From Mytilus trossulus (taxonomy: Eukaryota), in the NCBI RefSeq assembly GCF_036588685.1, contig NC_086379.1:21576001-21640000 (forward strand): a stretch of DNA of 64,000 nucleotides, in the 5' to 3' direction. Position 1 is the stretch's first letter. Each line of letters starts with the position of its first letter. Below the pieces are notes generated by a model. It made no database searches and was not told the DNA's origin. It saw only the letters and a program-made list of their open reading frames with translations. The position numbers and the translations under genes are program-made. Of this stretch, positions 28,601 to 53,500 are shown piece after piece.

Positions 28601-31600
28601 GTGTCCTTCAGCTGGCCCCTAAACAAATATATACTAGTTCAGTGATAATGAACGCCATACTAATTTCCAAATTGACATAAGAAATACTTATATGATGTAT
28701 AGTTCAAAGTCTCCCATTTCCTAACAGTATAATTCAAACATTTATCATGTTTATATTTCAGTAAGATATATTTCAAACACACAGATGTCCTTAATTTGTG
28801 TGGCTCAGTCTTTAATGTTCAATGTTGTATTTTCATAAACCGTTGTTTGCTTGTCTTGTCATCGTTTTAGTCGTTGTTTTTTTTGTGGTTATTTTTTAAA
28901 TAATAAGGAGTTATTTCAACCAACACGATATTGTACGACTGTATTAATCTACAACATGCCATTATGGTCGAAACGTTAGTTAAGTATGACGCAGAAAGAT
29001 AACTGAACAGTCTTCACATAAGACAGAAAAGATCGTTTTTTTAGTAAAGGGAAATAGTCAGTATCGAATACTTCCGAACAATCAACCTATATAAATATAT
29101 CTATACCGAATATAAACACTTGCTCAAGAGGTGTATGGAAAGAAGTGTCATACATATACGGAATTCAGATTCAAATAGGTAAGAACATCAAAACTGACAA
29201 ATAAAATCAATCAACGGAACAAGTTAGAACAACTGCAATATATCGGACTTGGATCATGCATTATCTGACAAACATGGTGGATTTAACTTGTTTTAATAGC
29301 TAGATAAACCTCCTTCTTATATAACAGCTGTTATGTTACAGATCTGATATATCGACGACTTTGAATGAACGGAAACTGCATCTAGATTCAAAATCAATGA
29401 GAGCTCGATACATTTTTTGGTTTTTTACATGACAACAAGTATTTGCCTAACATATAATTAAGAGTAACATACCCAGACACATATCTTTAGCTTCATCTGA
29501 GCCGTCCCTGCAGTGAACTTTTCCATCACATTTATCATATGATGCGATATATTGTTTACCATCGTTACATCTTAAATAACCCTTAGCACAAGCTTTCTCT
29601 GCAACAACAAGTACATGTCATCATTTAATTAAATGATTCTTATTTAGTTTTTGTCTCTTCCTGATTTATATTGCCCTTCGATAATATCGAATTAATGGAT
29701 ATACAAAAATCTACTTTTACTTAATTAGCCACAACACTGATGTCCAGTCTATATAAAATAACATATTGGTGAAGTTTTATCGGTTGCTAAAAACGCAAGT
29801 AACAATATAGTTTTGTTCACAAGTGTCCGAATGAAGGAAATGAACATTGATTTTCAATACAACAATTTATTTATTTTTCGAATTCATCTAGACATCAACA
29901 CTGCATCAAAAATTGTCTTTCGATGTGACTAAAAGATAAAGGAAAGGCCCTCTTTCGATTACCTTATATCAAATTTTGTTCACATTTTAAAAAAAATCAA
30001 AAGTTACAAAAGGTAGACATTTTGTATATCTTTTGGTGATTCAAAAGGCAGTTGAAATGGCCCACTTTTTTTTTGTCAAAAGGTGTATAAAAGGGCAACT
30101 TTTAGTATTCAAAAAGGAAGACAATAGTTATATCAAAGATGGACTTTATTTTGTCAGAAGGTGTATAAAATGGCAACTTTTAGTTTTTAAAAAGGAAGAC
30201 AATAGTTATATCAAAGATGGACTTTTTTGTCATAAGGTGTATAAAAGGGAAACTTTTAGTATTTAAAAAGGAAGACAATAGTTACATCAAAGATGGACTT
30301 TTAGTTATTCCAAATGTATCCATATCAAAACAGAAGTTGGACTTTTGATTAAATTTGGTCCTCAAAAGAGTACCTTTTGTTATAAAAAAATCAACAATTT
30401 TATACCTTTTAGAAACAAAATATTGATAAAATATGAACAAAAGAAATGCATGGTAGGCAAGATTTCCATATGCATGGCACCTCTTTTTTGTTGATGAAAT
30501 ATGCAGAGCAAAACTATGTTTGGGTATCGAAGTAAGTTCAAAGTAACTCTTGAGATAAAAGAGACTTTAATTTTTAGCTACCTCGAGTATTAAATATACA
30601 GATGGTCACCAGAATTCGGCCGTTTTGTACTTCTGCACGTCTGTCTTAAGGGGTCAAGTCATATCACAAACGCAAACCTATAGCTAATATCTTAGTCAAA
30701 TAATAATGTTCCCTGCTCCAATATTCTCACACAGGCACTTGTCTCAACAACAAAAATTTCCTTTATACCTTAATATTAAGGTATAAAGGAACTTTTTTTT
30801 TGAGACAAGTGCCTGTGTATCCTCACCAATGGTTTGTCCTGTAGTTAAATGTGTGTACTGTTTTTGTTATCTGTTATATTGAGTCTAGGGTTTGCTACCC
30901 TTTTGCATAATCACCTGTCCAATGGCAAGCTTTTAATATATTGTTGCATCAGAATAGACTTAACTGGGGTCTCCTTGTATATGGTGATTCATTTTACTTT
31001 AAACACCTTGTATATAAAAACGAAGATGTAATTTGTTCAACGTGTTAAAGGCCTTTTATAGCTGAGTATGTGCTAGGGTCTTTGCTAATTGTTGAAGACA
31101 GTACAGTGACCTGTAGTTGTTTACTTCTACATGTAGTAAACTGGTTTCTTATGAAGAGTTGTCTCATTGGCATTTATACCATACCTTCTTTTCTATATTA
31201 ATGTAACTTAATAGTTCATCTATAAATGGTCATTTCATATTTGTAAATTTGTTTTCTGCACTTGAATGGCACCAAAATTGCAACAAAATGAAAACATTTT
31301 ATTTGATTTGTTTTTTAATTATCTTTTATCATCCACTTTAATGTAACCCCAACATCTGGGGTGTCTTTAATGTTCACATCCCCTATTACACGGCTCTGTA
31401 ATAGTCGCCTGCTCTTGGTGGAGCATATATCTAAATATGCCCCATCCAATTTTGCCTTGTACTCCTTAAATTTTGAAGACTGCCAAGATGGTTGATGGGT
31501 TATAAAACCCTCTTGGCCTTCTTCATCAGACGACATGTAAGTTGGTTTTAAAGCCTCTGTTATCTTTGCCTTTTTGTCTGCACCTATGTCATACTTCTCA

Positions 31601-34600
31601 AGAGCTATGAGTCTTCTTTTTGCTTTCTTAAAAGAAAAAAAAGATTGAACATATGAAATTGTAACTTTTAAAAGATTCATTTGGTCAATACAATTTTCTG
31701 AAAGCATTAAAAATAAAGTGAGGTTTGTTTAAATACAGTACTGAAACAAAGAATCATGTTTGTTTGTTGATAATTTTAATACTTCAGCAGTTGTCATTAT
31801 CCTTTTAAAAAAAGACAGTTTTTTTGCTCTTGTTTTTTTTTAGAACACTGTGTATCTGTAAGCTCTTTTTTTAAATGAAGATGTTGGCCCCACATGAATA
31901 CTGAACAAGTCAATCTAATAACAAAACCTGACGACAACTAAGCTGATGTTGAAAGAACAATGGTCACTGTACCTTATAGCTTGGTAAAAGTGGCACATGA
32001 TTTTACATATAAAATATAATTATAACAAAAGACTTTAAGAGTCATTTCACATTCATGGAACAAATATTTTTCTTTATCAAAGTCTTTCTGTGTATTCTAT
32101 AATGTCCTATAATTGTACAAGTAGTTTTATCTATGAGTCTTTCATAAAGATATTTATTTTAAATGTTTATCATCATTATTCACAAATAACTTTTCTGGCA
32201 ATTATATGATAAACACCTTTTCTCAGAATGAATGTTGATGCTTGTGATATCCCCAACATTTATGACTGATGAGAGAGTAACAATATAAATTATCTGTCAA
32301 TTAGTGTTATTTTCATATAAATGAATGATTTTAAAAGATTTACTTTACCTGCCTACATTTATCCTGTATAATTAAGCTGTAAGGTATACTGTAATACATA
32401 CAGATATGTATGTATTTATTTTCGCGATAATAAACCAACTGTGAAATTCGTGAATATAAATGCAAAAATAAGTACAATTAGAGTATATTTAACAAGAGAT
32501 AGGCCTATGTCTGGCCACTTTTTGTGACAGCAAATTGCAAATAATGATGCATACCTCCTTTTTCCTTTCATATAGAGCTCTTTTTCTCTTTTCACCCTCA
32601 TACTTGTTTTTGCTTATAGCAGATTGCTGCTGCTTCTTTGTTAAAAAATATCTTGCCATGGCACCTACAAAAATCAGTAGCACAATCAAACCTGTGACTA
32701 TATATTTTATAACAAAAAATCATGATGTTTAAATATATATATACTGCAGCTGTGCTATGCGAGCAGTCAAATTGCATTGACCGTATATTCATATGTGATA
32801 TACAGTCACTGACCCTATATCACCTTGTTTATGCCGTTGACAATTTGTTTCTGTAGAGTAAATAAAACATACAGGTTCATGGAAATTTAATGTCGTCCGC
32901 TTCAAATTAAGAAATGATATTTTTTACCCAAAATACTTCATTTAGAACAGTTTTAAGAGTTGCAGTACATGAAGAATAACCATACATTGTCTCGAAATAT
33001 CAATGTTATTTTTACTTGGCTCGAAACAGGTAGAAATGCTAGGCGCAGCCTCGTTTTCTACCTGTTTCGAAGCCTTGTACAAATAACATTGATATTTCGA
33101 GACAATGTATGGTTATTCTATATATATATATATGTGAATTCTTTATAGCTAATACCACTTGTATCAAAAATCTAGGGATCAAACTTGGGTGTAGAAACTA
33201 GATTGTCAAATCTTTCTAAAAGTGTCGGTGCATTTTGTAGAGGTGTATTAACAATCAATGTGAAATGAGAAAACATGTTTACCTACAGTGTGATTGAAAT
33301 CAAAGTGCATCAGGGACATATCAGAAAATAGGAGCGCCAAGAGGTTTGATTTTAATCAGACTGTGTTCCTAAGTTATTGCATGCATTCATTTTATTATTT
33401 ATTAAGAAATTATTATCTTCAAATCATACAGTAATTGTAGATTTTAAATAATTACTTATAATATTTTATTTGTATCATAGAGAGACAACTCTTCTCTTCA
33501 GCAGAATGATCAGACTGTAAATTATATTTCCTAATTTTACAATTTAAAGAAGTATAGGGGAAAAGTAAAGAGTCACTGTAAGCTTTTGAAATTTATATCC
33601 ACTTACAATTCAATACGGTGATGTCATTGTATGCTGGATTCCAGCCTTTAACAAAGGTAACGATATGCGACGTCATATCTTTGTTTACTGCATCACTAAC
33701 TCTGAAATGAAAAACATACACATGTACATTCTTGCTAATGTATATACTGAGTATATAGCATATGCATACCTTTCATATTAATGCATATATCAAGATTTTT
33801 GATAACTACATGTACATATATTGTAACATTTGAATAGTAACTTTCAAAATACTAATAAATAAAACCATGCCTTGAAAAATTGACCAATCGACACTATGAA
33901 CTGCAATGCATTGGGAGTTACTACAAGTTTACTTGGCATCACATAAAACATATAGAATCATACGTTAAAAACTATGAAATCATATAGTGTATAAGACTCA
34001 AATTCAACATTGTTTTTTATTAGACAACATATGAATTGTAAAATATTTAACAATACTTTGCATGCCCAGGTTAAAAAATTATTCTGGTGGCTGAAACAAC
34101 CAACATCAACATTTTGCCCTTCTTGTCAATACAGTAGAACAGGTTTAGACCATTAGATTTTCTTAAGCTTTGTACACAATAAAATTGAGAATGGAAATGG
34201 GGAATGTGTCAAAGAGACAACAACCTGACCGTAGAAAAAAACAACAGCAAAAGGTCACCAACAGGTCTTCAATGTAGCGAAAAATTCCCGCACCCAGAGG
34301 ATTCCTTCAGCTGGCCCCTTAACAAATATATCGTAATGGCATTCATTATGTGAAAACAAAATTTTAGGTGCTGATCAAATATTGTAAAAACACCTTTTTC
34401 CTTCAAATCTCCAGCTGAGACCTTTTTCTTCTCCATCTTTGTACCCTTGTTTCACAGCATTCTGCAACATAAAAGGTAGTTTTGGAAACATTTTAAAGGT
34501 TTATTTTTTTGCCAATTGAATTATTAAAATAACTGTACTGTAAATGAAGAGTTGCCAACGTCAATTGTCTATTTGACAGTAAAAAAATACAGTCTTACTA

Positions 34601-37600
34601 TGGAGGCATAGTAATAACAAAAAGAAATGATAAGTGAGAGCTTGAAAAAATGTATAAATTTTAGTTAAAATTCATAGGGCCTTGTTTCAGGGTGGTATAA
34701 ATGGGGTAACTTCATGACGAATAACGGTAAAATTTCTTGCCAAATGATATTTACGTTTTTTTTGTGTGCATGACAATAAAATATGCACTTTCTTTTAGAC
34801 GAGAAAAAAATTGAATGACTTTGATGAATCATGTTAATTCTTTTCCAAAAATAACTGTGATAATAATTATTTGAGACCTCTGACATATCACCATACAGAT
34901 ATTTTGATGAATCACGCTAAAATCTTTATCAATTTGAGGCTAACAGTAGCCTTAAATGGCCTTTTTACACCTGACAGTAAAGGGCATTGCTACTCTCTTG
35001 TATATAAATACTGGTTGGTCTTTTAATAAATATTTTACCGCAAGCAAGGGTACAATACAAGCATTCACTTTCATTTCAAGTCCCCTTTTCCTATTATTAA
35101 GGAAAAATGGTGACATTGATTACTGTTATTCCTTTTGTTTGTTGCCATTTTTGTGCTGTTAAGTTGTATTTTAAGTTAACAAAATTCAGAATGTGCAAGT
35201 TAACAAGTAGTTTCTGAGTTGAAAATGTAAGCTTTCCATTGGTTTTTGTCATAAAAAGTCATCAAGTCAAAAAAAATATATATAGATATATAGACAAATT
35301 TTAAAACAGAGTGAAACTCTTGAAAGCTGTGCATGTGGAAATGGATTGACATGGGGCAAAAAAAAAGCCATTAAGTGATCCTCACTGATATTGGTTTTAC
35401 CTTAACTCCTATTGGAACTACTAAATTTTCTTTAGATTTAGCAGAGCTGCTTTCATGTCCTGTCTGTGCTCTCAGTCGCTGTAATATTTCCCCCTGCCTC
35501 TCAAATATTCTTATCAATAATTCTCTTTGACCTGTGCAGATGAAGAAAAGATTATAAATGGATAATTGGACTACTGTAAATTCAGAAATTGTTGTGTGCA
35601 TTTATTATTGCGATTTTGTCATCTTAGACTAATATGCGATTTTGTGAAAAATCCTGTGTAATTCATATAAAATATTTCAAAATGCAAGTTTCAATTAATG
35701 CGTTTACAACTTGGTCTCATTTTCGCAATAATAAAAACCTCCCATTAATTTCTGAATTTACAGTAATTCAATTTAAATTCAGAAACAAAATACACAATTC
35801 TAAATACCTTGTTTTATGATTAAAAGCTTGTCCTGCACCTTAAAAGCAGCCATACCCTATATTAATTTTTACACCCTCATATCTAACTATATTTAATCTC
35901 TAAGTTTTTTAAATGGATCATAATAAAAAGTCTATTAAGATTTGCCAGGATATCATTTCTATGCTTAATAAGTGGTTTTAAACTGGTCTATGAGTGTGAA
36001 TAATTTTTATGCAACAACCACCTGTTCTATGACATGGACCTGTTGTTCAGTGGTGATTGTTTGTTGGTTTTATTCAAATGAGTTAATCGTTTATTATTTA
36101 CGGTAGTGTTTTTTATATAGATTAGACCAATGGTTTTTCTGTTTGAATTGTGAAAAATACTCATTTTGAGGCTCTTTAAAGCATGCTGTTTGTTGTGATC
36201 CAAGGCTCTGTGTTACAAGTCATACTTTTGTCAACTTTTTATTCATTCTGACTAGCATGACTAGGATATATGAAGGTTGTCTCATTAGCACTCATACTAC
36301 ATCTTCTTATTTATATAATATTATACATGCATGACCTTCATTATATTTGTGAACAGAAAGCAAAAAAACTATTTCTAATGAAAAATCAGTAGATTGTCTC
36401 AAAGAAAAAAATCTTTTAACTTACACATTAATAACAAATAGACCAAATTTGATAAAAAAAAATCACAATTTCATGCACTTTTGTTAATCTTGTGATATAG
36501 AACCCCCTACATTGTACTATATGACACATCTTCAAATAAATTGTCCAGTGGCGGATCCAAGGGGGGTTCTGGGTGTTGGAACCCCCCTTTCTTTTAGGCA
36601 ATCAATACATTTGAATGGGAGCATATACTTGAAAACCCCCCTTTTTACTCTGGGTTGGGACCTCCCTCCCCCCAATTTTTAAAAAGGCTGGATAGTCCAT
36701 ATGCAAATTAAATGTAAGATCCGCCTGATCAGTTGAAATGATAATATGTGTCATATGTGTAATATGTATAAATCTTACCAAGACTGTGAATATCATTGGA
36801 ACTGGTATGCATGGGTCTTGCATTTGGTGTACTGGACTCTCTACAAGGACCACTGCTACCAGCGCTGCCAACACCACTTGTCCTTGGTGTATTAATACCA
36901 CTTGTCCGGCTTGGTGTATTAATACTACTAGTGCTTGGTGTATTAATACAACAAGTGCTTGGTGTATTTATTCTACTAGTGCTTGGTGTATTAATACTAC
37001 TAGTGCTTGGTGTATTAATACTACTAGTGCTTGGTGTATTCATCCTGTTCCGGACTGGTGTTTGATTTATCTGTAAAGATATTTTCATTTCTTAGGTGTT
37101 AAGCAATTTCGTACAAAAAGCGTGTATTTGAGTACTTGCATGTCTTATGTGGAGACATGGAACACAGTACTTAGTTATAGGGAGCTACCATTTGATTTTT
37201 ATGGGGAGGGGGGGGGGGGGCTAGGATGAAAAATTGTGTCTTGCATTTTTTTTTAGTTGTAATCTCTGTCCTGCCTTTTTATTTTTCACTCTAGACTCTA
37301 TCGTGTCTATCTGGTCCTGGTTTTTTTGTAGTTTATCCTGACTTTTTTAAAAATAAAATTGTCATCCTGCCTTTTTTTCTCAAACTCCTGTCCGAGCCCT
37401 ATTTTTTTCAAATTTCATCCTAGCCCTAACCCCCCCTCCCCCCCCCCCCCCTCAATAAAAATCAAATGGTAGCTCCCTTATCACTATGCAAAAATGAAAC
37501 ATAGAAAAACAGTCATATCCATTTTATGGTCAGACTATATGATTTATACGGATAAGATTATCTAAGATTCATGGTTATATGCACAGGCACTTGTTTCTAT

Positions 37601-40600
37601 CCATTGGAAGAACCACTATCAACGTATATTCGTAAATATACGTTGATAGTGGTTCTTCCAATGGATAGAAACAAGTGCCTGTGGTTATATGAATGATGTA
37701 TAATTTTCTGACAGTCTGTCCTATGCTAAATTTAGACATTGGGGTTTTCCATCTGATTTTCGTTGATGTAAGCGGTTAGGAGGATTTCGTTATAAAATTG
37801 TTGCAAAGTGCGTGTTTAATATGTCTAATATCACCAGTTTAATGACTAATAAAATAAAAACGGAGCTTCTTTGTCTACTGAGATTTTTTCTGTAATAGAA
37901 AAGCCGACATTGACACAGCCTATGCCCCTTAGATCATCATAACAACATGACAGTAATATGTTTTTGAAGTGAGATGGTTATCTAGATCTTGTAAAAAGGC
38001 TGATGAAATTTGCGTTTAAAACATGTATACACACTTACTTGTCTTGATGTGGATGAATTCTGATGAAGGATATCAGGACTTGCTGCCAGGAATTCATCCG
38101 TACTTCCATCATCCTCGCTTTGACAGTCTTCGTGCTCGCTGTCTTGTATCAAATCTCTTAAATGACGTGCTTCTCTCTGTCGAACACGACTCCTTTGAAT
38201 AACAGCAAGAGGTGTTTCGTCTAAAGTTTCATCATCAGAAATATCGTTATAAGACATGTTTGATACTAGATTTACAGTGATGACAATATTCGTGTTTGAA
38301 TAGGCGCCGAAATCGCAAGAACCGTGTCTGCGGCTGTGTAAAAGAGATAAGGATGGCATGCCAAGATGCTGATTGGCTAAGTGTTAAAGACATTTCCATA
38401 TACAGATTGGAAAATAACCAAAACTTCAACCGCATGGGAATGAAACTTCAGCGCCATTATTGAACCTGAGAGTTTTATCAGCTTAGATTTGTTTTGATAA
38501 ATGGTGTAAGTACAAAATGCATATCATTTAAAAAACAGAAGAAAAAAAACATGGATATTGTGGTATATATGTGCCCTTCTCCAAAAGGTTCAATAGCCTG
38601 CTGCTGCAGCACCAGCACCACTGGGTGTTTCATGAAGAAACTCAGTTAGAGAAATTCTCATTGACACTTACAAAAACCTGCATGGTTTTAAAATACATGA
38701 TCCATTGTACATGTATGTATCTTGTTTTTATCTGAGGGGGAGGACAGGGGTCCATTCGCCCTTATTCACGTTCGCCATACTACGTTTTTGCCCTGATACC
38801 TGTTCGCCCAGGGTCCATTCGCCCATATTTTTATTATTTTCTGTTTGTTGTCCAGTCGCATAATTTTAAGTATTTGAACAAAATATACTAAAGTTTGTTA
38901 ACAAATTGACAGAGTATTTATATTGCCGCAATAATTTTTATCATTTTCTCTTTGATTTACAGAGTAGAATTGGTAACCATATACAATGTATTTCTCTTTA
39001 TTGATATTTGTTAACAAAATGATTGTATTCAGCTGTCAATCATGAATGTATGCAGTATAACTGAGAATAGCACTGTCTCCGAGTATAATAATGAACTTGT
39101 AAATCCGTTTCATGATTAACAGTTCGTACATCATTGTGAATATATACCATAAAAATATCTGAATAAGTTTATCAACTTCAATGCCCTGAATATCAATATT
39201 TTTTAGTAGGGCGAACGAACTCAGGGCGAACGTACCCAGGGCGAACATGTTATTAGGGCGAACGATCCCGATACCCTCCCACCCCTGTTCTCCTTTCTCC
39301 TACCCCTCTTCTCCTTATTTTTTTTTTAATTTACCGAAAAAAAAGAGAGATATTTTATTTTTTCATATTTTATTTTTTCTCCAACTTTTTCTCCTTTCTC
39401 CCAGCCTTCCTCTCCTTTCTCCTACCCCCTTTCTCCTTTCTCCTACCCTCTTTCTCCCTGTCTCCCTTACCCCTGTCCTCCCCCTCTTATCTTATACCAA
39501 AAAATTAAAAATAGAAATTGAAAAATATAACTTTAATGTTGTACATGTACATTTACATATATATGCATTTCTGACAGCCATTTGTGTAAAAAAAAAGAAA
39601 GTAATATGAAATTAAAAAATATAACTTTAATCCTAAACAATATATTGTTTTAAACCAGGCATATGCACCAGAAAGTCATCATCAGCAATAAATGTTTTTT
39701 ATATATAGAGGGGGATACATGTATGACCTTTATCTGGACTCCAGAATCAGGTGTTTTTTTTGAAAATTTTTTAGTCATACATTGGTATCACTTTGTAGTC
39801 TTCTTCGTCCGAATACTTTTGGTTTTCACACTGTTACTTTAGTATAAATCAATAGAAATCTATGAAATTTAAACGCAAGATTTATGACCACTAAAGGAAG
39901 GTTGGGATTGATTTTTAGATTTTGGTTTCAACAGTTAAGGAATTAGGGGCCAAAAAAGGGCCCAAATAAGCATTGTTCTTGGTTTTCGCACAATAACTTT
40001 AGTATACATGTAAGTAAATAGAAATCAATGAACATAAGGTCTATGACCACAAAAGGAAGGTTGGGATTGATTTTGGGAGTTGAAGTCCCTACAGTTTAGG
40101 AATTTGGGGCCAAAAAGGGTCCAAATAAGCATTTCTCTTGGTTTTCACACCATAACATTAGTATAGGTAAATAGAAATCTATTATAATATATAGATAGAG
40201 ATAAACTTTAAACAGCAAGAATGTACAGTTAATTATAAGTAGACCTAAAAAAAAGTCAACATGACCAAAATGGTCAATTGACCCACTAAGGAGTTATTGT
40301 CCTTTATAGTCAATTTTTAACAGTTTTCTTAAAATTTGTAAATTTTTACTAACATTTTCCATTAAACTACTGGGCAAAATTCATTATAGATAGAGATAAT
40401 TGTAAGTAGCAAGAATGTTCAGTACAAACACATCACCATCACCAAAACACAATTTTGTCATGAATCCATCTGCGTTTAATTTTCACATAGACCAAGGTGA
40501 GCGACACAGGCTCTTTAGAACCTTTAGTTATTTATACCTGTATTAACCTGTATCATACGTAGTTACCTGTAATATTGACTTAAATGAAAGGTTTTATTGT

Positions 40601-43600
40601 TGACTCAAATGAAATATATAGTTTGTGGCGCAAATGAAAGATTTTTCAGCGCAAATGAAATGCCTATTGGTGCAAAAGCTAAGCACTGAACTGATTCAAC
40701 CTTTCTGCTAGGATTTGGACAAACCAATTTAGTTTTTTTCAAGTGTGGCCTAGTTCCAATGCTAACTTGTACATTTTGTACCAATATAAAAAAAGAGGAT
40801 GTGGTATGATTGCAATAAAGACAAGTCTATCAACAAGATACAGTAATTAACAACTATAGGTCACCATACCACCTTCAGCAATGAGCAATTAATTTGAGAT
40901 AATTGAAGAAAAAATTATCACTATTAAAGAAATGTATATTTCCAGATTTCAAAAGGTCACCAAATTGACAGGTGATCCACAAATTCTTTCAGAGTCTAGT
41001 TTGGTGACCTTTTTTTTTATATAAAAATTAAATATCTTTATTTCAGAATGCTTTATGGAGAGATTATAGTGATAAAGAGAAGTGGTGTAGATGGAGCACA
41101 TTTTCTTTTAACTGTTAAAGACTGTTTGTTAGGAAGGTAATTATAATTAAAATACTTATATACAATGTAAAAGAAAATGATTATCTGTGGAAATTAACAT
41201 TAAAAGGGGAGTTAACTCTGCAAAAATGACTCTTTTTTGTCAGTTTTTGGTTGATTTTCTTTAAATTTGTGTATGATACTTTGATGGGGTTATAAGTTTG
41301 TGTATGATTATATTATATAATTTTCTTCTCATGAAATGTACAAAATTATATTCTGGGTTATGGATATTTAATATATACTAAAAATTAAATCTTAAAAATC
41401 TTCTGTTGCTATAACGATGAGGTTAGGGTCAAATTTATGCTAGATTAATAGATTGACTGGACAATAATGCATTCTGGATAGTATCCAAGCTGATCTGTGT
41501 CCACACTTGTTTTTAATGTAAATAAAGGGCTACAATGTAGTTGTAGATGAGATTGTTCTGAAATCATAAGAACTAGTTAGTTTCCCCGCTCGCTGTTAAG
41601 GATTATCATTAAGAATGTAGCTTAAGTTTGACCCAAAAGTCAAACCATTATCATGATTATAGTATAAACCATATGTAGATTTGTGCTGGGTTTTTTTTCA
41701 GGGGCAAAGATTGTGATATTATAATTAAGCTTCCAAATGTTTCTGCAGAACATTGTAGAATTCATGTATCAGACAATAAACAGGTAAATTGTATTTATAA
41801 ACAGGTGAATTGTATTTTAAAGATCTTTGTTCACTTAAACTAGTACCAAACCATGAAAAAAACAGTACTGATGATCATGCTGATATATCCAGTGGTGGAT
41901 CCAGGGGAGGGAGGGGTTTGGGGGTTGGACTCCCCCTTTTTTTTGCTGATCAATGCATTTCATCCCCCCCCTTTTTTTAAATGTCAGGATTCGCTCCTGT
42001 ATATTTGGTTAAAAAAAGTTGTTTATGTTTTCTTACCCTGATGTTTATGACCATAGTTATTGTATCAAACACTATCATTAAATTAAAGTGTAGATTATCT
42101 TCCTATTATGTCCTTATTTTTTTTATGCCACACCTGTTAAATTATGGATGATAAATAAAAAATGGGAAATGATAGGAGGAGTAGGACATCTTTGTACTGA
42201 GGAAACATTTTCTTTTTCATGCCAAAGTTTATTCAATTGTATATACAACAAAGTTTAATTTGATTGGTAAAATTAACAACTATAAGATAAGATAATTTTA
42301 TTAACCAATCAAGGTGCCCAAAATTTGAGCTATACAATCAAATGAATGAATTACAAAATAAAGCACAGAAAATGATTAAAGTACATAACATTTAGACAAA
42401 AAAAAACACACATAAAAACACATTTACACTTATTAACCTGATATAAACCAAGTTATTGACAACACATAGTTGTTATGGGTGCCACTGTGATCTGGAGAAA
42501 TTACATAATTCTTTATAGTACTAGGTCAATGGGAGACAACTCCTGATCAATTTTATTCGTTATATATATCTACATTTTTCTTCTATTTTTTTTTAGAACA
42601 ACAATATTGTCTATACTTTTCTTTTGTTCTTCAGAAAGAGAGTGCAATAAATTAGATAAGTTTGAAGTAACAAACAAATCTTCAGATGAAAGAATCTAAA
42701 CAAATTTCTATAAGTCACTAAACAATATGTCTAATTATAAATCATTCTTTTGTCCAAAAATGTTTTATTTTGAAAAAAAACCCGACTGTATGAAAGACAT
42801 GAAATATGTACTGTTCATTTCTTTTGTAGGTTTTTTTGACAAACTTGAGTATAGATAATCCCGTCGTGGTCAACTCTTCATATTTTGACAAACCAGTAAA
42901 ATTGAATCATGGAGATGTATTCACCATCATAGACCGATCTTTTCGCTTTGATGAAACAGAGGAATCAATGCAGAGCAAGTTAAGAAATCCAGATAAAGAT
43001 TTGAATTTGAACAGACCATTAATCAGGATAGATGATGCATCAAAGGTAATTTGTATTTTTAGTTCCATACTGACAAAGTTGAAGTAGACTCTAGGTTTGC
43101 ACTCTGTCCGTTTGTTGATCTGTTCATTTGCATGTCTGGCAAATCATTTTTCTTCACTTTTTCTTCTTGCTTGAAGATATTGATTTGATTTTATCATGGC
43201 AAGTTACAGATCAAGTTCAAGATTTGTGTCAGTCTAATGATTTTGTGCAGAGTTATGGTCCTTGGAAAATTTACCTAAATAATCAGTGTTCCATACTTTT
43301 TAGTCCACTACTGATGAAATTGAAGGGGACTTTAGGTTTGCACTCTGTCTGTTAATCCATTCTTCAGGGCGGCAAATCAGTTTTCCATTTTTAGCTCACC
43401 TGGCATGAAGGGCCAAGTGAGCTTTTCTCAACACTTGGCGTCAGTCGTTGTGGTCGTTAACTTTTTACATTTTTAACCTCTTCTAGAGAACCACTGTAGG
43501 GAATGACACCAAACATGGCACAAATGTTCCTTATGAGGTGCTAACCAAGTGTTGTTACTTTGTAGCCAATCCATCATCCAAGATGGCCACCAGCGGGGGA

Positions 43601-46600
43601 CTTAGTTTAAAATAGGACTCTATGGGAAATGCATACAAATGACTTCTTTTAAAGAAACACTGAATGGAATGAAACCAAATATGGCATGAATGTTCCTTAT
43701 GAGGTGCTGACCAAGTGTTGTTACTTTGTAGCTGATCCATTATCCAAGATGGCCTCCAGCGTAGGACTTAGTTTAACATAGGACCCTAAGGAAAATATAT
43801 ACAAATGTCTTCTTTTAGAAAACCACTGAATGGAATGAAACCAAACATGGCATGAATTTTCCTTATGAGGTGCTGACCAAGTGTTGTTACTCTGTAGCGG
43901 ATCCATCATCCAAGATGGCTGTCAGTGGGGGACTTTTGAATGAAATCAAACCTAGCCTGAATAGATATAGGAAGATGTGGTGTGAGTGCCAATGAGACAA
44001 CTCTCCATCCAAATAACAATTTAAAAATTAAACCATTATAGGTTAAAGTACGGCCTTCAACACGGAGCGCCTTCAACACGGAGCCTTGGCTCACACCGAA
44101 CAACAAGCTATAAAGGGCCCCAAAATTACTAGTGTAAAACCATTCAAACGGGAAAACCAACGGTCTAATCTGTATAAAGAATGTTCCTTTCCTTATAAGG
44201 TTGTGTTGTTACTTATAGCCAAATTTTATATTTATTTATATGATTTCAAAAACCCAAGTAGAATCAGGTGAGCGATACAGGCTCTTTGGAGCCTCTAGTT
44301 TTCTTTGTTCTTGAAGATATTGATTTGATATTTGGTATATAGTTTTATCATGACAAGTTCATATAAATCATGGAAGAAATTTGTTTCAGTCTTATTATTT
44401 TGTTATGGTCCATATCTAATATTAGAGTTCTATATATGTTAAACCATATTTCTGTACAAAGGGAGATACATGTAACTCATTTTTAATAGACATTCCTTGG
44501 TAAATTGTTTGAAATTTCTTTGCTTTTTCAAACTAATTTTCTGAATGCTATATATATAATTTTTCTTTATGATGCAAAATCCTTTGATTAGATGATAATC
44601 TATTTTCATTATGTTATATATCTTAATACATTACATTGTGTAGATAAAAGTTGTTGACAGTTTATAGATAGATATTTAACAAATTTTAATTAGTTTGTGA
44701 CACATAAAAGATAAAATATTTGGAATTATTAATTATATTTGATTATAATCTAAAAATAGATATATATATTGTATTACATCGTATCTTTTGTCTTGTTAGT
44801 TTTTTCAAATTTCTTTCATTATGCTTGAAAATATTGATTGATAATATTTATACGTACAAACACATTAATGCTACTTATACTTCCTTTTAGTCTTTGAAAA
44901 GTAAAAGTCAAAAGAAGTCAAAAGAAGAAGTGAAGTCTAGAAGCAAAAGACGTCGTATGCTGAAGAAACAAAAGTAAGAATCATAATTTAACATGTTTAT
45001 ACTTGCTTCCTCAAAAATAATTGTTATATTGTGGCTTATGAAATATTACTTTATTGAATTAATATTGAATCTGATTCCTAATACTTATGAATAAAAACAA
45101 AAATAAACTTTCACACTATCCTGAATACAATATAGTTGTTCATGATCATCTATCACTGTCTGGAAAAAAATCATTGGAAATGCAAGACATAGGGAATTTG
45201 CAACTCAGTTACTATTAGCATCAAGCTTTATATTGAAGAAGATGTTGCATGAGTGCCAATGAGACAACTCTCCACCCAAGTCACAATTTATAAAAATTAA
45301 CCATTTATATATAGGCCAAAGAACAGTCAAGATTCACCACTAAGCTTTGACTAACACTGATCAGTTAGCTAAAAAGGTCCCCAAAATGTTCTAGTGTAAA
45401 TCCCATCTTGGAGAAACCAAGGGTCTTATCTATATAAAAACGAGAAAAACTAATGAACCACATCAACAAACTACAACTACTAAACATCAGATTTATGCCT
45501 TAGGACAGGTGCTAACAATAACAGGGGGTTTAAATCTTTACCCTTATCTGAAACAATAGTGTAACATCACAACATAGAAAGACACCTTATAAAATATCAA
45601 TTGAAATTGCTTAACTAAATCAAAAGACATATTAACACAAGAGAACATACACTGAACGAAGAAATTTGATCTATGATATAAAAAAAGATGTGGTATGATT
45701 GCCCCTGAGACAACTCTCAACAAGAGACCAAAATGACACAGAAATAAATAACAACTATGGGAAACCGTGCAGTCTCATGAATAACAAATCTGTATCACTT
45801 AAAAAAAAACGACAACCACTGAATTACATGATACAATGTAAACAATTAAATAAACCAATTTAGTAAGGCCGTTAGTTTCAGGTTAAGATGATCATGAATT
45901 TCAATCAACTTGAACTTTGTGACTTCAACTTGAAACTCAGTATTTATATTCACCGTGATATGATCTATCTTATTTGAATGAAACTACCAATAAGAAAGGG
46001 ATCAAGAAACTGCTGTAGGAGACTTGTTGTCTCAAGGATTTCAAGAAAAAAATGTTTCTGCCTAATTGGTCAGCTTGTTACATGTATTAAACAAACAACC
46101 CAAACTGATTCTGACATGCCCAAAAATTCAGTTATTGTTACTACATGTATTATAAAGATGCCGTTTTTATTCTTTTTACTGTAGAGTTGTAAAGGCAAAT
46201 GTTAACCATTCACTTTTATTTCAGATATTGGAAACGAAGAGAAAAAGAATGGGAAAATGACAATATAGATGAAGTAGTTGAAAATGAGAATAGACAAATA
46301 GGAGAAACAAAAGGAAAAAATAGTGTAGATAGCTTTTATGTGGACATGTTTAAAGATCCACTATTTTCGAAAATGGTCACATACCAAAAGGCTAAGAGAT
46401 TATCCTTAGCTTTGAAAGAAAACGGACAGAAAAATAATGATATTTTAGAATAGATTTGGATTTATATATAGTTTTATATAGCAAATGTTTAAAATTTGTT
46501 CATTTTATATATATTAGCTCATAATCAAAATCTGCATTTAATAGTCAAGTGGATTATGAATAGGAATTATTCAATTTCATGTTTAAACAACAAATTTTAT

Positions 46601-47536
46601 GTAAATTTTGAGATAACATTTCTGTCCTTATCTTTGGTTCAAAAGATATGAATAAGATTTTAGAGAGCATGCACATTGACTACTAGTGAAGCAGCTACTT
46701 GTATTCAAGAAAGCTTGCACATTGGTTTATTATACAGTGAAGCAGCTACTAGAATACTTAATTCATAATTTTGAATCAGAGCTTTATTACATTTTTCATG
46801 GCAGAAAAAGCAAAGCGTCCAAGAAAATCTTGCCCTAAATGTTATACAGTTTTTTCAGACAGACATGCTCGTAGACATCTACTTGAATGTAATGTTCAGT
46901 TTTGTGAAAGTGAAGTATCTCAATCTGATAATGAAAATATACCCCTGTCAAGTGTGGGAAATAACACATCAAATTATCAAAATAATATCAGTGATGATGA
47001 AAATGAAATAAATTATGATTGTATGAATAAATTCAGAAATTTATCAAATATATCCCGTAATAATTTAGAAGATGAGGATATTGAAAGCTACTTTGATAGA
47101 TGTGAAGATAATCTGACTGATTCATATAGTTCTGATAATTACTCAGATGTAGAGTTTGATATTGAATGTCATGAAAGTATTGGTGTAGATCAAGAACATA
47201 ATTCAGAGTCAGATATATCTCAAATTACTTACTGGTTTTGTAAACTTTTATTATTATGGCAATGTATTTATTATATATCAGATGCAGCTATTTGTTTTCT
47301 TTTGAACATTTTAGCTACATTTTTTAAATTGTTGTCAGTGAATTCAGATGTTTGTTCTAAAGTACAAAATGTTTTTCCCAAAAACATGTACCAGTTGTCT
47401 AAACTTTTGAAAAGTGATATGTTAGATTTTAAACAATATGTTGTTTGTACCAACTGCTATTCATTGTATGAATTCGAAGATTGTTATACGACCGCAAATT
47501 TTGAAAAAATTTTCGTCGTATATTGCTATCACGTTG

Positions 47537-47568
<32 letters not shown>

Positions 47569-50500
47569 CGAATACTTTTAGTTTTCACACTCTAACTTTA
47601 GTAAAAGTGAATAGAAATCTATGAAATTTTAACACAAGGTTTATGACCATAAAAGGAAGGCTGGTATTGATTTTGGGAGTTTTGGTCCCAACATTTTAGG
47701 AATTAGGGGCCAAAAAGGGCCCAAATAAGCATTTTCTTGGTTTTCGCACTATAACTTTAGTTTAAGTTAATAGAAATCTATGAAAATTTGACACAAGGTT
47801 TATAACCACAAAATAAAGGTTGGGATTGATTTTGGGAGTTTCGGTCCCAACAGTTTAGGAATTAGGGGCCAAAAAGGGACCCAAATAAGCATTTTTCTTG
47901 GTTTTCGCACCATAGCGTTAGTATAAGTAAATAGAAATCTATGAAATTTAAACACAAGGTTTATGACAATAAAAGGAAGGTTGGTATTGATTTTGGAAGT
48001 TTTGGTCCCAACAGTTAAGGAAAGAGGGGCCCCAAAGGGTCCAAAATTAAACTTTGTTTGATTTCATCAAAATTGAATAATTGGGGTTCTTTAATATGCC
48101 GAATCTAACTGTGTATGTAGATTCTTAATTTTTGGTCCCGTTTTCAAATTGGTCTACATTAAGGTCCAAAGGGTCCAAAATTAAACTTAGTTTGATTTTA
48201 ACAAAAATTGAAACCTTGGGGTTCTTTGATATGCTGAATCTAAAAATGTACTTAGATTTTTGATTATTGGCCCAGTTTTCAAGTTGGCCCAAATCGGGGT
48301 CCAAAATTAAACATTGTTTGATTTCATCAAAAATTGAATAATTGGGGTTCTTTGATATGCCAAATCTAACTGTGTATGTAGATTCTTAATTTTTGGTCCA
48401 GTTTTAAAATTGGTCTGAATTAAAGTGCAAAGGGTCCAAAATTAAACTAAGTTTGATTTTAACAAAAATTAAATTCTTGGGCCTCTTTGATATGCTGAAT
48501 CTAAACATGTACTTAGATTTTTGATTATGGGCCCAGTTTTCAAGTTGGTCCAAATCAGGATCTAAAATTATTATATTAAGTATTGTGCAATAGCAAGTCT
48601 TTTCAATTGCACAGTATTGTGCAATGGCAAGAAATATCTAATTTCACAATATTGTGAAATAGCAAATTTTATTTTCAATTAAGAGTTATCTTTCTTTGTC
48701 CAGTATAGTAAGCAAGAAATATCTGCAAGAATTTTTTTTAATTGGAGTTATCTTTCTTTGTCCAGAATCAACTTAAATCTTTGTTATATACAATATACAA
48801 TGTATATTCACTTTTTACTACCAACTGATAAATTTAAATAATCTTTACCATTCAGTGATAACAAGCAGTTTTTTTACATCATGTATTTAAATGAGTAGTA
48901 ATTGTTGCAAACTCCATTATAATATTTTAATTGAAATTAGTTTTGGAATAAGGGAAAGGGGGATGTGAATAAAAAATTGGGTTAAATTTTTCTCATTTGA
49001 AATTTCATAAATAGAAAGAAAATTTCTTCAAACATTTTTTTGAGAGGATTAATATTCAACAGCAAAGTGAATTGCTCTAAGAGAAAACAAAAATTTTAAG
49101 TTCATTTGAATACATTCATTCTGTGTCAGAAACCTATGCTGTGTCAACTATTTAATCACAATCCAAATTTAGAGCGGAATCCAGCTTGAATGTTGTGTCC
49201 ATACTTGCCCCAACCGTTCAGGGTTCAACCTCTGCGGTCGTATAAAGCTACGCCCTGCGGAGCATCTGGTTATCATATTGTTGAAGGTTCAAAAGTCTCT
49301 AAAAAGTGCTCTTTTATAGAGTTTCCTAATCATAGACTTCCTTATTTGAGAAAAAGATGTAATCAGCCTCTTTTAATGGAAATTAAAAGTGAACCTTCAA
49401 AAATATTAGCCCCTTTCAAAATATACTGTTACAAATCTATTGAGTCCAGCTTAAGTTATTTTGTTAAAAGACAACATTTTGAAGACTTATGTGAACAATG
49501 GCGATTGAGAGAAACAAGGGAAGATATTATGTATGACATTTATGATGGAAAATTATGGGATGATTTTAATGGGAAAAAATATATTTTTTTTACAAAAGAG
49601 GATAATTATGGTTGCATTTTAAATGTTGATTGGTTTCAACCATACAAACATACTCATTGTTCTATAGGTGTCATGTACATAGCATTTTTTAACCTTCCAC
49701 GAGATCAAAGATTTAGAAGAGAAAATGTTTTACTAGTTGGTGTTATTCCGGATATGAAAACAGAGCCTAAGACAAACACCTTTGTTACTCCTCTTGTTCA
49801 AGAACTAAAGAAGTCTTGGTCAGAAGGTTTTCAAATGTTTTCAAATAAGTCACCTTTGATATTGAAATGCTTTAAACTTGCACTCATATGTGTTGGATGT
49901 GACATTCCTGCTAGTAGAAAGTTGTGTGGTTTCCTTGGACATGCAGCAACCTCAGGTTGCAACAAGTGTAAAAAGAAATTCCCAGGAACAGTAGGTGAAA
50001 AAAATTATGGTGGTTTTGATAGATTAGAATGGCTGTCCAGAGACAACGAAAGTCATCGTCAAGAATGTGGTTTGATACACAATTCTACTAGCAAGGGAGA
50101 CAAAGAGAACCTTGAACGTCAGTTTGGTACAAGATATTCGGCATTGCTTGACCTTGACTACTTTGATCCAGTAAGAATGACAGCAATTGATCCAATGCAT
50201 AACTTATTTTTAGGAACAGCAAAACACATGCTTTCTGTATGGAAGACAAAGAAATTATTATGTGATGATGACTTTAAAAAAATTCAGACAAAACTGGATC
50301 CGTTTGAATGTCCTTCAGATGTAGGGAGACTACCCAAGAAATTTGCTTCATCCTATGGGTCATTTAATGCAGATCAGTACAAAAATTGGACCCTATTGTT
50401 TTCTATATATGCTTTAACTGATTTATTGCCAAAGGAACACCTTGATTGCTGGAGAAAGTTTGTGTTAGCATGTAGAAGATTGTGTTCAATGTATATTAGT

Positions 50501-53500
50501 GTTGGTAATGCAAAAGTTGCAGATAGATTGCTAGTTGACTTTTGTAAAAAATTTGAACAATTGTATGGGCAAGATTTTGTCACACCGAATATGCACCTTC
50601 ATGGGCATTTATATGATTGTATAATAGATTTTGGACCAGTATATTCTTTCTGGCTTTTTAGTTTTGAAAGAGAAAATGGTATATTAGGCTCTTACAAAAC
50701 TAATAAAAAAAACATAGAGGCTCAGTTAATGAGGAGATTTTTAAGAGTCTTTTGCAAGGGAAAAAGAATCCCAAATGGATGAAAGATTTATGTCTTTATT
50801 CAATGATATGTCAAACACTACAAGGGAGAGGGGTACATTAAATGATGTTTCTGTTTCTTTGAAACCTAGCATTCTCGATATGTCATCACAATTTGTACCT
50901 ATAAAAGAAGTATGTTGGTATTTATCAGATAACATTTTTGTTCCAAAAATGAAGGATGCTGTTCTGAGTGATTGTGAAATAAGACTGTTAAGCCAAATGT
51001 ATTCAACACTGTATCAGTATGATTTTATTGTTTGTCCCTCTGTCAAAGTGTGCAAAACCTTGTATTTAAATGGAACATTGCTTGGTTCCAAAATGAGCAG
51101 AAGTGTAAGATCATCCTATATTACAGCTTATTGGTGTAATAACGAAGGGACAATTGACACTGACAATTTCGATTTATCTCCTCATCCAGGACAAATTGTA
51201 CAAATGTATAAGCATAGTATTATTGTAAATGGAGAAACAAAGACACATTTTTTAGCAAAAGTCAATTGGTACAAGAATTTACCTGCTTCTGTACAGCACT
51301 ATTATGGCAAACCGATTGAAATATGGTCTTCAGAATTATTTGTTCAAGAAGGACCTGCATTATTTATACCAGTACACAGAATTAAATGTAGGTTTGTTCA
51401 TGCGAAAGCAAAATTTAACAGCAGAAATGTAATTATTGTTGCACCAAGAGAGCGTCATATTTTATGAATATGGATCCACTTATAATGATACAATTTATAA
51501 TCATATTGTTTTACTTTGTACAAAAAAATACAACTATTTAAGAAATTGATTATTTGACAATGTCAAAATTACAATATTTTCTTGTCATGATTCTATTATT
51601 TAATTTTATGAATGTGTCATAACTTTTTATATATTTTTTCAAAGAAAGTACTTTCTATGGAGTGTATTTGATTATTGTAGATATTTATGATGTTATGAGT
51701 ATTCCTTTTGTATTGGATATTTAGATGTGTTTTGATGTAGTGTGTGTTATACTAATCTTACATGCCAGTACTTGCTTTGAAACAGTTATATGTAAATAAA
51801 TTAAACATAAAGTTTATTATTAAATAAACAATTTTGTTACAATTATTGTAGTTATTTATATACCACTATTATTTATGTTTGCTTAACAAATAGCAAAAAA
51901 GGTTGAGTTCATGCATGGTTCTAATACCCAGGTGTTATACATGTATCATTGAATCATACAAAATTCTTATAAACTATTTCATTTACCGGTAATACTTAGG
52001 GAAAATCTTTCAAATGTATAAAGATGTGTAAATTTTATCATATAACAAAGTATTGGAGAAAGGTCAAATGTTTCCTCAACAGTTTAAGTCAGTGAAGTAG
52101 ATATGTACTCTTTCAGCGAAACATCCTGTAGACAATAGTAGTAGTTAGTTTGCTGAGAATGGTTTATAGACACGACTATTAACATAAGGTTTTACATTCA
52201 GTCATTAATTTGGGGGGGGGGGGGGGGGGGGAGTCATAAATAGTTTACCTATACCTTTTGACGTGCATTAAATGTCACAGATAAAATTTAGAATGGAAAT
52301 GGGGAATGTGTCAAAGAGACAACAACCCGACCAAATAAAAAACAACAGCAGAAGGTCACCAACAGGTCTGTCATAAACATTTTACATACAAAAAATGTCG
52401 AAGGTTGTCTGTTCTCTACCTTCTGACACGCACACAATGTCAAAGGTTGTCTGTCCTATCCCTTTTGACATGCATAAATGTCACAGAAAGTCTTTCCTAT
52501 ACATTTTGACATACCACAAAATGTCAAAGGTTGTCTGTTCTATACCTTTTGATATGCATAAAATGTCAAAGGTTGTCTGCTCTATAACTTTTGATATGCA
52601 TAAAATGTCAAAGGTTGTCTGTTCTATACCTTTTGATATGCACAAAATGTCAAAGGTTGTCTGTTCTATACCTTTTGATATGCACAAAATGTCAAAGGTT
52701 GTCTGTTCTATACCTTTTGATATGCATAAAATGTCAAAGGTTGTCTGTTCTATACCTTTTGATATGCACAAAATGTCAAAGGTTGTCTGTCGATTACATT
52801 TCAAGGTTCACAAAATGTCAAAGATGGTCTTTTATATACATTTCAACATACCAAAATGTCAAAGGTGGTATTTTGTCAATAAAAAGGCGACAAAATATTA
52901 TCTGTAGAAGAAGGTAATCTTTTGATTGTATTTTATTATACCCAAAAGTTATCAAAAGATGATTTTTCATGCAGTGCAATCATTGTTAATTAACCTCTTA
53001 AGTAAAACGAACAACCAATATCATGAATATAGACATCAACAGTCAAGATTTCTTAATCGAAAATAGGACATTATACATACGAAGTCGGTATATATATATA
53101 CGAATGTAACAACTTTGCTGGTATCTAAAGTTCTCAGATCTTAATCACCAAGTCATATAGTTAGTAATAGTCGGCTTTCAGTATTCCGGGTAAAATTGAG
53201 AATGGAAATAGGGAATGTCTCAAAGAGACAACAACCCGACCAAATAAAAAAACAACAGCAGAAGGTCACCAACAGGTCTTCAATGTAGCGAGAAATTCCT
53301 GGACCCGGAGGCGTCCTTCAGCTGGCCCCTAAACAAATATATTGATAATGAACGCCATACTAATTTCCAAATTGTACACACGAAACTAAAATTCAAATAA
53401 TACAAGACTAACAAAGGCCAGAGGCTCCTGACTTGGTACAGGCGCAAAAATGCGGATGAAGGTAAATCCCGGAAAAAGCTTCGAACGCATGACATTTAAT

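Follow-up and report, generated by a model that had tools for sequence, protein, structure and literature searches.

The DNA considered here is a 64-kb window (C7:21576001-21640000) of a 1.3-Gb assembly with 14 large contigs, whose nearest public proteins are those of Mytilus species. It contains a host gene with LDLa repeats, encoded on the minus strand by exons near 62686, 61823, 56169, 54390 and 29512, and an element of about 23 kb (29899-52976) that carries a transposase gene and two multi-exon genes, referred to as gene 1 and gene 2. Since LDLa exons are found near 29512 and 54390, the element is situated within a single intron of the host gene.

The left end of the element begins with CACTGCATCAAAAATTGTC... 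(in a shorter form, CACTGCATC...) and the right end closes with ...GCAGTG. Compared inward, these terminal inverted repeats (TIRs) agree at 22 of 26 positions. A degenerate 26-mer derived from both ends, searched with up to three mismatches, has two matches in the window, which are the two ends themselves in inverted orientation, while none is expected from 100 shuffles. The flanks read GACATCAA on the left and TCATTG on the right, and the same three base pairs adjoin both ends as an apparent target site duplication (TSD). An 11-mer spanning the left insertion junction (TAGACATCAAC, 29889-29899) recurs at 53030-53040, 54 bp past the right end, probably by chance. Tandem arrays are located inside both ends and share the octamer ATATCAAA, which, read inward from each terminus, occurs four and six times in the two terminal kilobases and six times in the 21-kb interior, both strands counted. 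An open reading frame (ORF) at 49190-50782 matches Pfam Transposase_21 (PF02992; E 1.6e-11, 44.2 bits against a cut-off of 28.6) and, weakly, DUF4218. Among the features that define EnSpm/CACTA elements, CACT(A/G) within a short TIR, a subterminal motif and a Transposase_21 (tnp2) domain are found here, with CACTG at both termini and the motif inside each of them. A preliminary description of this DNA had claimed CACTG/CAGTG termini, a 22/26 TIR, a 3-bp CAA TSD, subterminal arrays, a CMC transposase and a position in one intron of an LDLa gene, and each of these points is borne out. The element is very probably a defective, low-copy cut-and-paste transposon of EnSpm/CACTA type (CMC superfamily), lodged in an LDLa-gene intron and carrying a captured FHA mini-gene (Table 1).

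Table 1. Coordinates of the element, its genes and repeats, and of related loci elsewhere in the genome (positions refer to the window unless a contig is given)
Feature	Position	Strand	Remarks
Left TSD	29896-29898		CAA; same 3 bp as right flank
Left TIR	29899-29924	+	26 nt, starts CACTG; same start in C14, C8 and C5 copies
Left subterminal array	30068-30302		78-bp unit x3.1; carries ATATCAAA
Gene 1	31315-38257	-	7 exons, 408 amino acids; intact predicted model
Gene 1 exons	38257-38039, 37070-36779, 35531-35401, 34461-34394, 33701-33607, 32664-32555, 31626-31315	-	
24-bp in-frame tandem repeat, gene 1 exon 2	36876-37040	-	encodes NTPSTSSI-type Thr-Pro repeats
Gene 2	41048-46453	+	Ki-67-type FHA mini-gene; predicted model
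Gene 2 exons 1-3	41048-41136, 41702-41783, 42830-43045	+	encode complete FHA domain
Gene 2 exon 4, form a	44891-44977	+	TAA at 44975-44977; 157 amino acids
Gene 2 exons 4-5, form b	44891-44973, 46225-46453	+	232 amino acids
Transposase, N-terminal part	46798-47486	+	residues 1 to ~230
Nested insertion in transposase ORF	47487-49272		1.78 kb, satellite-bearing; flanked by GTTAT direct repeat
Transposase, core with Transposase_21	49273-50745	+	frame different from N-terminal part
Transposase, C-terminal part	50745-51467	+	third frame, through 2-bp deletion near 50743
Right subterminal array	52392-52866		42-bp unit x11.3; carries ATATCAAA in inverted orientation
Right TIR	52951-52976	-	26 nt, terminal CAGTG
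Right TSD	52977-52979		CAA; same 3 bp as left flank
Nested repeats in introns and spacers	34175-34331, 39822-40134, 40779-40868, 43963-44178, 45236-45758		
Nested repeat, gene 2 intron	43963-44178		216 bp; not in C5 copy
Nested repeat near right end	52280-52372		outside genes
Further paired loci (Mb)	C8:63.32, C4:51.70, C2:70.21, C9:43.87, C7:35.02, C7:36.57, C48:0.60, C1:4.69, C13:23.63, C13:49.72, C8:63.60		gene 1-like exon and transposase

The transposase has 1904 homologues in the database at E <= 1e-10, and these homologues carry PF02992; it is 97% identical to a protein of Mytilus californianus and 53% identical to one of abalone. Its relatives in the genome are single intronless ORFs of about 790 to 1,020 amino acids. 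When full-length homologues are mapped onto the window, the coding sequence falls into three pieces in different frames. The first two are separated by a block built of 161-bp and 135-bp tandem units. This block is missing in a copy on contig C5, where the frame is uninterrupted, which identifies it as a nested insertion into coding sequence. The frame is broken again by a 2-bp deletion that, in alignment with copies on C5 and C14, is specific to the window. Both lesions had gone unstated when the CMC transposase was first noticed. The C5 transposase has other lesions: a 1-bp insertion, a 35-bp deletion and three stops. Given these differences, the two transposases, which are separated by 24 nonsynonymous and 9 synonymous changes, are both dead as judged from their frames and have decayed independently.

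Searches of the genome with the ends and genes of the element retrieved other copies. The closest, on C5 (about 53.61-53.65 Mb), is 96-98% identical to the window and retains the order of FHA gene, transposase and right end; similarity breaks off exactly at the terminal CAGTG, beyond which the flank is unrelated. The right end of this copy is present twice (C5:53610149 and C5:53615431, 5.3 kb apart) with a common outside flank, which indicates a local duplication after insertion, and an exon resembling the first exon of gene 1, at only 73% identity, is found at C5:53658131. On C13, an internally deleted derivative of about 3 kb joins the sequence of 30068-31159 directly to that of 51042-52976 and is devoid of the left terminus. 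A more distant relative on C14, with about 72% identity at the terminus and 74% in the transposase, has CACTG ends 21.9 kb apart, between which gene 1 adjoins the left end and the transposase is located about 2.4 kb inside the right end. Two more left ends, on C8 and C5 (37.1 Mb), are each followed by a gene 1 last exon, and on C2 an inverted pair of termini 2.85 kb apart surrounds such an exon. The copies on C5, C13, C14 and C8 begin or end exactly at CACTGCATGAAAA and have unrelated flanks, which establishes that the boundaries are real. When two mismatches are allowed, a 24-nt terminus consensus is found at 15 sites genome-wide, against one for a reversed control. The family is thus real, albeit very small and nearly extinct in this assembly, with about 15 termini.

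Several observations weigh against the reading of the locus as a copy of such a transposon. The preliminary description had proposed a search for other copies with the same gene order and different TSDs; copies with exact termini, different flanks and the same order do exist on C5 and C14, yet the CAA pair of the window is the sole complete pair among the flanks read, and the three base pairs outside the C14 ends are TTC and AAT, which do not match. In the C5 copy, neither the left terminus nor the last exon of gene 1 is present, which leaves the window as the sole complete three-gene copy seen. An empty site, which the preliminary description had suggested looking for as an allele in other haplotypes, is absent from this assembly in both paralogous and haplotig form, as the flanks at 29300-29898 and 52977-53190 are both single-copy. 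The DNA-binding role considered below for the gene 1 protein is drawn by analogy only; the protein has no Pfam match and no significant fold match. The single complete two-ended copy and the unmatched C14 flanks could also be accommodated by a chance composite, in which two solo termini with no relation to each other lie by accident on either side of ordinary host genes and a dead transposase, and no 23-kb mobile unit ever existed. Such a coincidence is extremely improbable, and the explanation is already disfavored: it leaves unexplained the matching TSD and a TIR confined to two sites in the window, the C14 copy in which left end, gene 1, transposase and right end follow in the same order, the C13 derivative linking the left subterminal region to the right 2 kb, and the C5 copy that shares the FHA gene, transposase and right end and whose homology stops exactly at the terminus.

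The preliminary description regarded gene 1 and gene 2 as two intact spliced cargo genes. Both are indeed intact, with open frames and GT-AG introns, but only gene 2 is cargo. In gene 1, all junctions are GT-AG with consistent phases, and each exon has its counterpart in the M. coruscus protein P0121, with 80-100% identity outside the repeat exon. Its last exon has 27 matches in the genome, 13 of which lie 10-27 kb from a Transposase_21 match; at all 13 paired loci gene 1 lies upstream of the transposase on the opposite strand, in divergent orientation. Conversely, 10 of the 11 best transposase matches have a gene 1 partner. In the C14 copy, four gene 1 exons are kept in order beside the left terminus while the introns are unalignable, and the two proteins share 60% of their amino acids, with a ratio of nonsynonymous to synonymous substitution rates (dN/dS) of 0.13 over 223 codons, synonymous sites being saturated. 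From the transposase pairing at 13 loci and this low ratio, the predicted gene 1 is a conserved second gene of the transposon lineage and not captured cargo. Eleven further loci combine a gene 1-like exon with a transposase of about 50% identity, 10-27 kb away. At 7 of these 11 loci the transposase is an uninterrupted ORF of about 790 to 1,020 amino acids and may be active, and the long spacers could hold other cargo.

The gene 1 family extends beyond mussels. An exhaustive HMMER search with the last exon yielded only 76 cluster representatives; the 10 looked up by name belong to Mytilus species, Saccostrea and Crassostrea oysters, a sea cucumber and, with weaker matches, amphioxus. A profile search adds M. 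trossulus and M. californianus, and the annotated proteins of five Mytilus species, of oysters and of a sea cucumber include orthologues. Family, structure and complex searches were performed with the public orthologues P0121 and P0214 (the latter for gene 2), the exons of the window being searched singly. Against Pfam, the family has no match, and none of 14 members matches a transposase-associated family at E up to 1; homology to the TnpA family is therefore not detected among these 14 members. The AlphaFold model of P0121 has a mean predicted local distance difference test score (pLDDT) of 57.8, with 185 disordered N-terminal residues and a helical C-terminal half at 70-94. Proteins of the gene 1 type combine an acidic, Thr-Pro-containing disordered N-terminal half with a basic, helical and conserved C-terminal half. 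Foldseek comparison of this model with the PDB returned nothing at E <= 0.001, and VIA-align gave a best Z of 6.6 to a small helical bundle, under the noise level for helical models.

A link of gene 1 to C14orf93/DUF4616 was considered but is not supported by HMMER, which finds PF15394 in 0 of 14 members at E up to 1 and in 0 of 23 profile matches. In a language-model search for look-alikes, a DUF4616 cluster scores 0.92, a value reached by 4-10% of shuffled proteins and hence a lead only. It is conceivable, although improbable, that the accessory-gene family is the distant source of the DUF4616/C14orf93 genes, independently of any role of the FHA gene.

Gene 2 has a different origin. Its two predicted forms are both in frame with canonical splice sites, and four of its exons are matched at 85-97% identity by the M. 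coruscus protein P0214, an annotated FHA protein of 142 amino acids. P0214 matches Pfam FHA (E 4.4e-14) and the FHA domain of human Ki-67 (2AFF, E 4.4e-33 over residues 6-104; 1R21, about 5e-33). The FHA domain is also recognized in the window itself, where exons 2 and 3, taken singly, match Pfam FHA at E 1.9e-4 and 0.046. P0214 keeps the GR, S-x-x-H and N-P motifs, and the window exons carry the same residues. Exon 3 has three matches only in the genome: the window, the C5 copy and a locus at C4:68.93 Mb. The C4 locus runs on into long Ser/Pro/Lys-rich exons, as expected for a Ki-67-like host gene. Exons 2 and 3 have their acceptor and donor sites at the same positions in gene 2 and the C4 gene, so that both comparable intron positions agree, which implies capture as genomic DNA with its introns. 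The exon 3 search revealed no FHA match in the C14 copy or in other family members, and the capture is therefore specific to the subfamily of the window and C5 copies. By homology, gene 2 is true host-derived cargo consisting of the FHA exons of a Ki-67-like gene. The preliminary description had proposed a three-gene animal CACTA lineage. While the element is a genuine TIR-bounded CMC transposon with other copies, the lineage itself is a two-gene one, judging from the copies compared, and the three-gene state is a variant of one subfamily.

Gene 2 and the host exons are 67% identical over 69 codons, with dS of about 1.05 and dN/dS of 0.21, and the frame and splice sites of gene 2 are intact in the window and C5 copies where they can be read (exons 1-3 and 5). 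Intactness at such a distance from the host gene suggests long-term constraint on the element-borne FHA gene, the host branch also contributing to the ratio. This could be the signature of a domesticated locus, an immobile relic in which gene 1, the FHA mini-gene or both are kept for a host function while the transposase decays. The transposase is broken in both near-identical copies, whereas frames and splice sites survive in gene 1 of the window and in the FHA exons of both copies, and the annotations of M. coruscus, M. trossulus and M. californianus include intact orthologues. Yet domestication is unlikely. The FHA exons 1-3 of the window and C5 copies differ by five nonsynonymous changes and no synonymous one, that is by 1.3% against 1.9% in noncoding DNA (exons overall 1.2-2.3%). 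With exons changing at about the noncoding rate, and mostly at nonsynonymous sites, there is no sign of current constraint or of selection since the two copies separated. Moreover, the coding targets of the small genes are 3-7 times below that of the transposase, and these genes could therefore survive by chance. Finally, gene 1 exists in multiple copies that are always linked to a transposase, and in M. coruscus the gene 1 and FHA proteins are on different contigs.

Other insertions have accumulated within the transposon. The preliminary description held that nested insertions spare the cargo exons and took this as a sign of long selection, an argument that is not supported. Cargo exons make up about 11% of the left 17 kb (29899-46800), about 10 insertions would miss them by chance with a probability of about 30%, and one insertion did strike the transposase ORF. 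Nested insertions have also brought in related satellite-like arrays, with units of about 160 and 135 bp, at 47581-48570 and 39819-40182. An abundant short interspersed repeat is present as stretches of 90-200 bp, two of them inside the element (34175-34331 and 52280-52372) and one just outside (53191-53380), with at least 20 matches among a few dozen unrelated loci of the genome. Two foldbacks in intron 1 of gene 1 (37179-37478 and 37569-37696) probably represent small nested elements of the inverted-repeat kind. In one of them, 41-nt arms containing long G/C runs are separated by 218 bp; the other forms a near-perfect palindrome of 62 nt.

Together, these data point to a lineage consisting of an intronless transposase of about 970 amino acids with a Transposase_21 domain, close to the right end, and a divergent seven-exon gene for a protein of about 400 amino acids, close to the left end. 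One subfamily has also taken up the FHA exons of the host Ki-67-like gene as intron-bearing DNA, and in it they make an intact mini-gene located between gene 1 and the transposase gene. By reference to En/Spm, the transposase would cut at the CACTG ends and generate 3-bp duplications. The accessory protein may act like plant TnpA, binding subterminal repeats of the ATATCAAA type and bringing the ends together. The FHA protein could read a phosphothreonine on an element or host protein. The window copy itself would no longer be self-mobile.

It is conceivable, although improbable, that the accessory protein with its Thr-Pro repeats and the captured FHA protein of Ki-67 type work together in a module that depends on phosphorylation. 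In such a module, the FHA domain of the element would recognize phosphorylation of the cyclin-dependent kinase (CDK) type on the NTPSTSSI repeats or on a host protein. Assembly of the transposition complex would then be tied to the cell cycle, and the transposon would use a host cell-cycle reader for its own regulation. Prediction of the complex of P0121 and P0214 gave a score of 0.00, which carries no weight for or against binding.

Animal EnSpm/CACTA elements are usually annotated by their transposase alone. Here, a constrained and hitherto unnamed second family is tied to the transposase at 13 loci and offers, by analogy, a specific candidate for a TnpA equivalent in animals. The mussel element is also an uncommon animal case in which a DNA transposon has captured host exons together with their introns and in which an intact domain gene has been kept across mussel species, the captured domain being a phosphothreonine reader. 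A practical consequence is that several Mytilus proteins listed as 'uncharacterized' or 'FHA domain-containing' are transposon genes. The literature search found no paper on the conserved accessory gene family or on a transposon-borne FHA gene. With the window copy dead and the family nearly extinct, no recent mobility is seen in this assembly.

In plants, En/Spm (CACTA) elements are characterized by CACT(A/G) termini, a 3-bp TSD, subterminal arrays, a second protein, deleted derivatives and the capture of host fragments. The mussel element resembles them in its CACTG termini, apparent 3-bp TSD and subterminal arrays, in the association of a Transposase_21-type transposase with a second protein, in its internally deleted derivatives and in host gene capture. 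The genes of Spm and the workings of En/Spm have been summarized (PMC1636069). Beyond its animal host, the mussel system departs from the plant one in that its second gene is a separate divergent unit rather than an alternative splice form and has no detectable similarity to TnpA, that the transposase is intronless in the mussel relatives, and that the captured material is an intact domain-encoding mini-gene rather than a fragment.

Among animals, a Transposase_21 transposase is shared with the CMC/EnSpm elements of Metazoa (DNA/CMC-EnSpm in RepeatMasker). SmTRC1 of Schistosoma, since whose description Transposase_21 elements have been known in Metazoa, has CCC termini and a 2-bp TSD (PMC1636069), in contrast with CACTG and an apparent 3-bp TSD in the mussel element. 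CMC elements have been listed across molluscs (PMC10294476), polymorphic CMC-EnSpm insertions are described in oysters (bioRxiv 10.64898/2026.02.10.705023), and according to a preprint on Takifugu, full CACTA elements encode, besides the transposase, another protein whose function is unknown (10.1101/2021.11.16.468883). As to the cargo, it is related to the FHA domain of Ki-67 (2AFF, 1R21) through the P0214 alignment and to the FHA exons of its own host. Unlike Ki-67, which is a very large nuclear protein, the predicted product of gene 2 is a transposon-borne, stand-alone protein of 157 or 232 amino acids with a basic tail.

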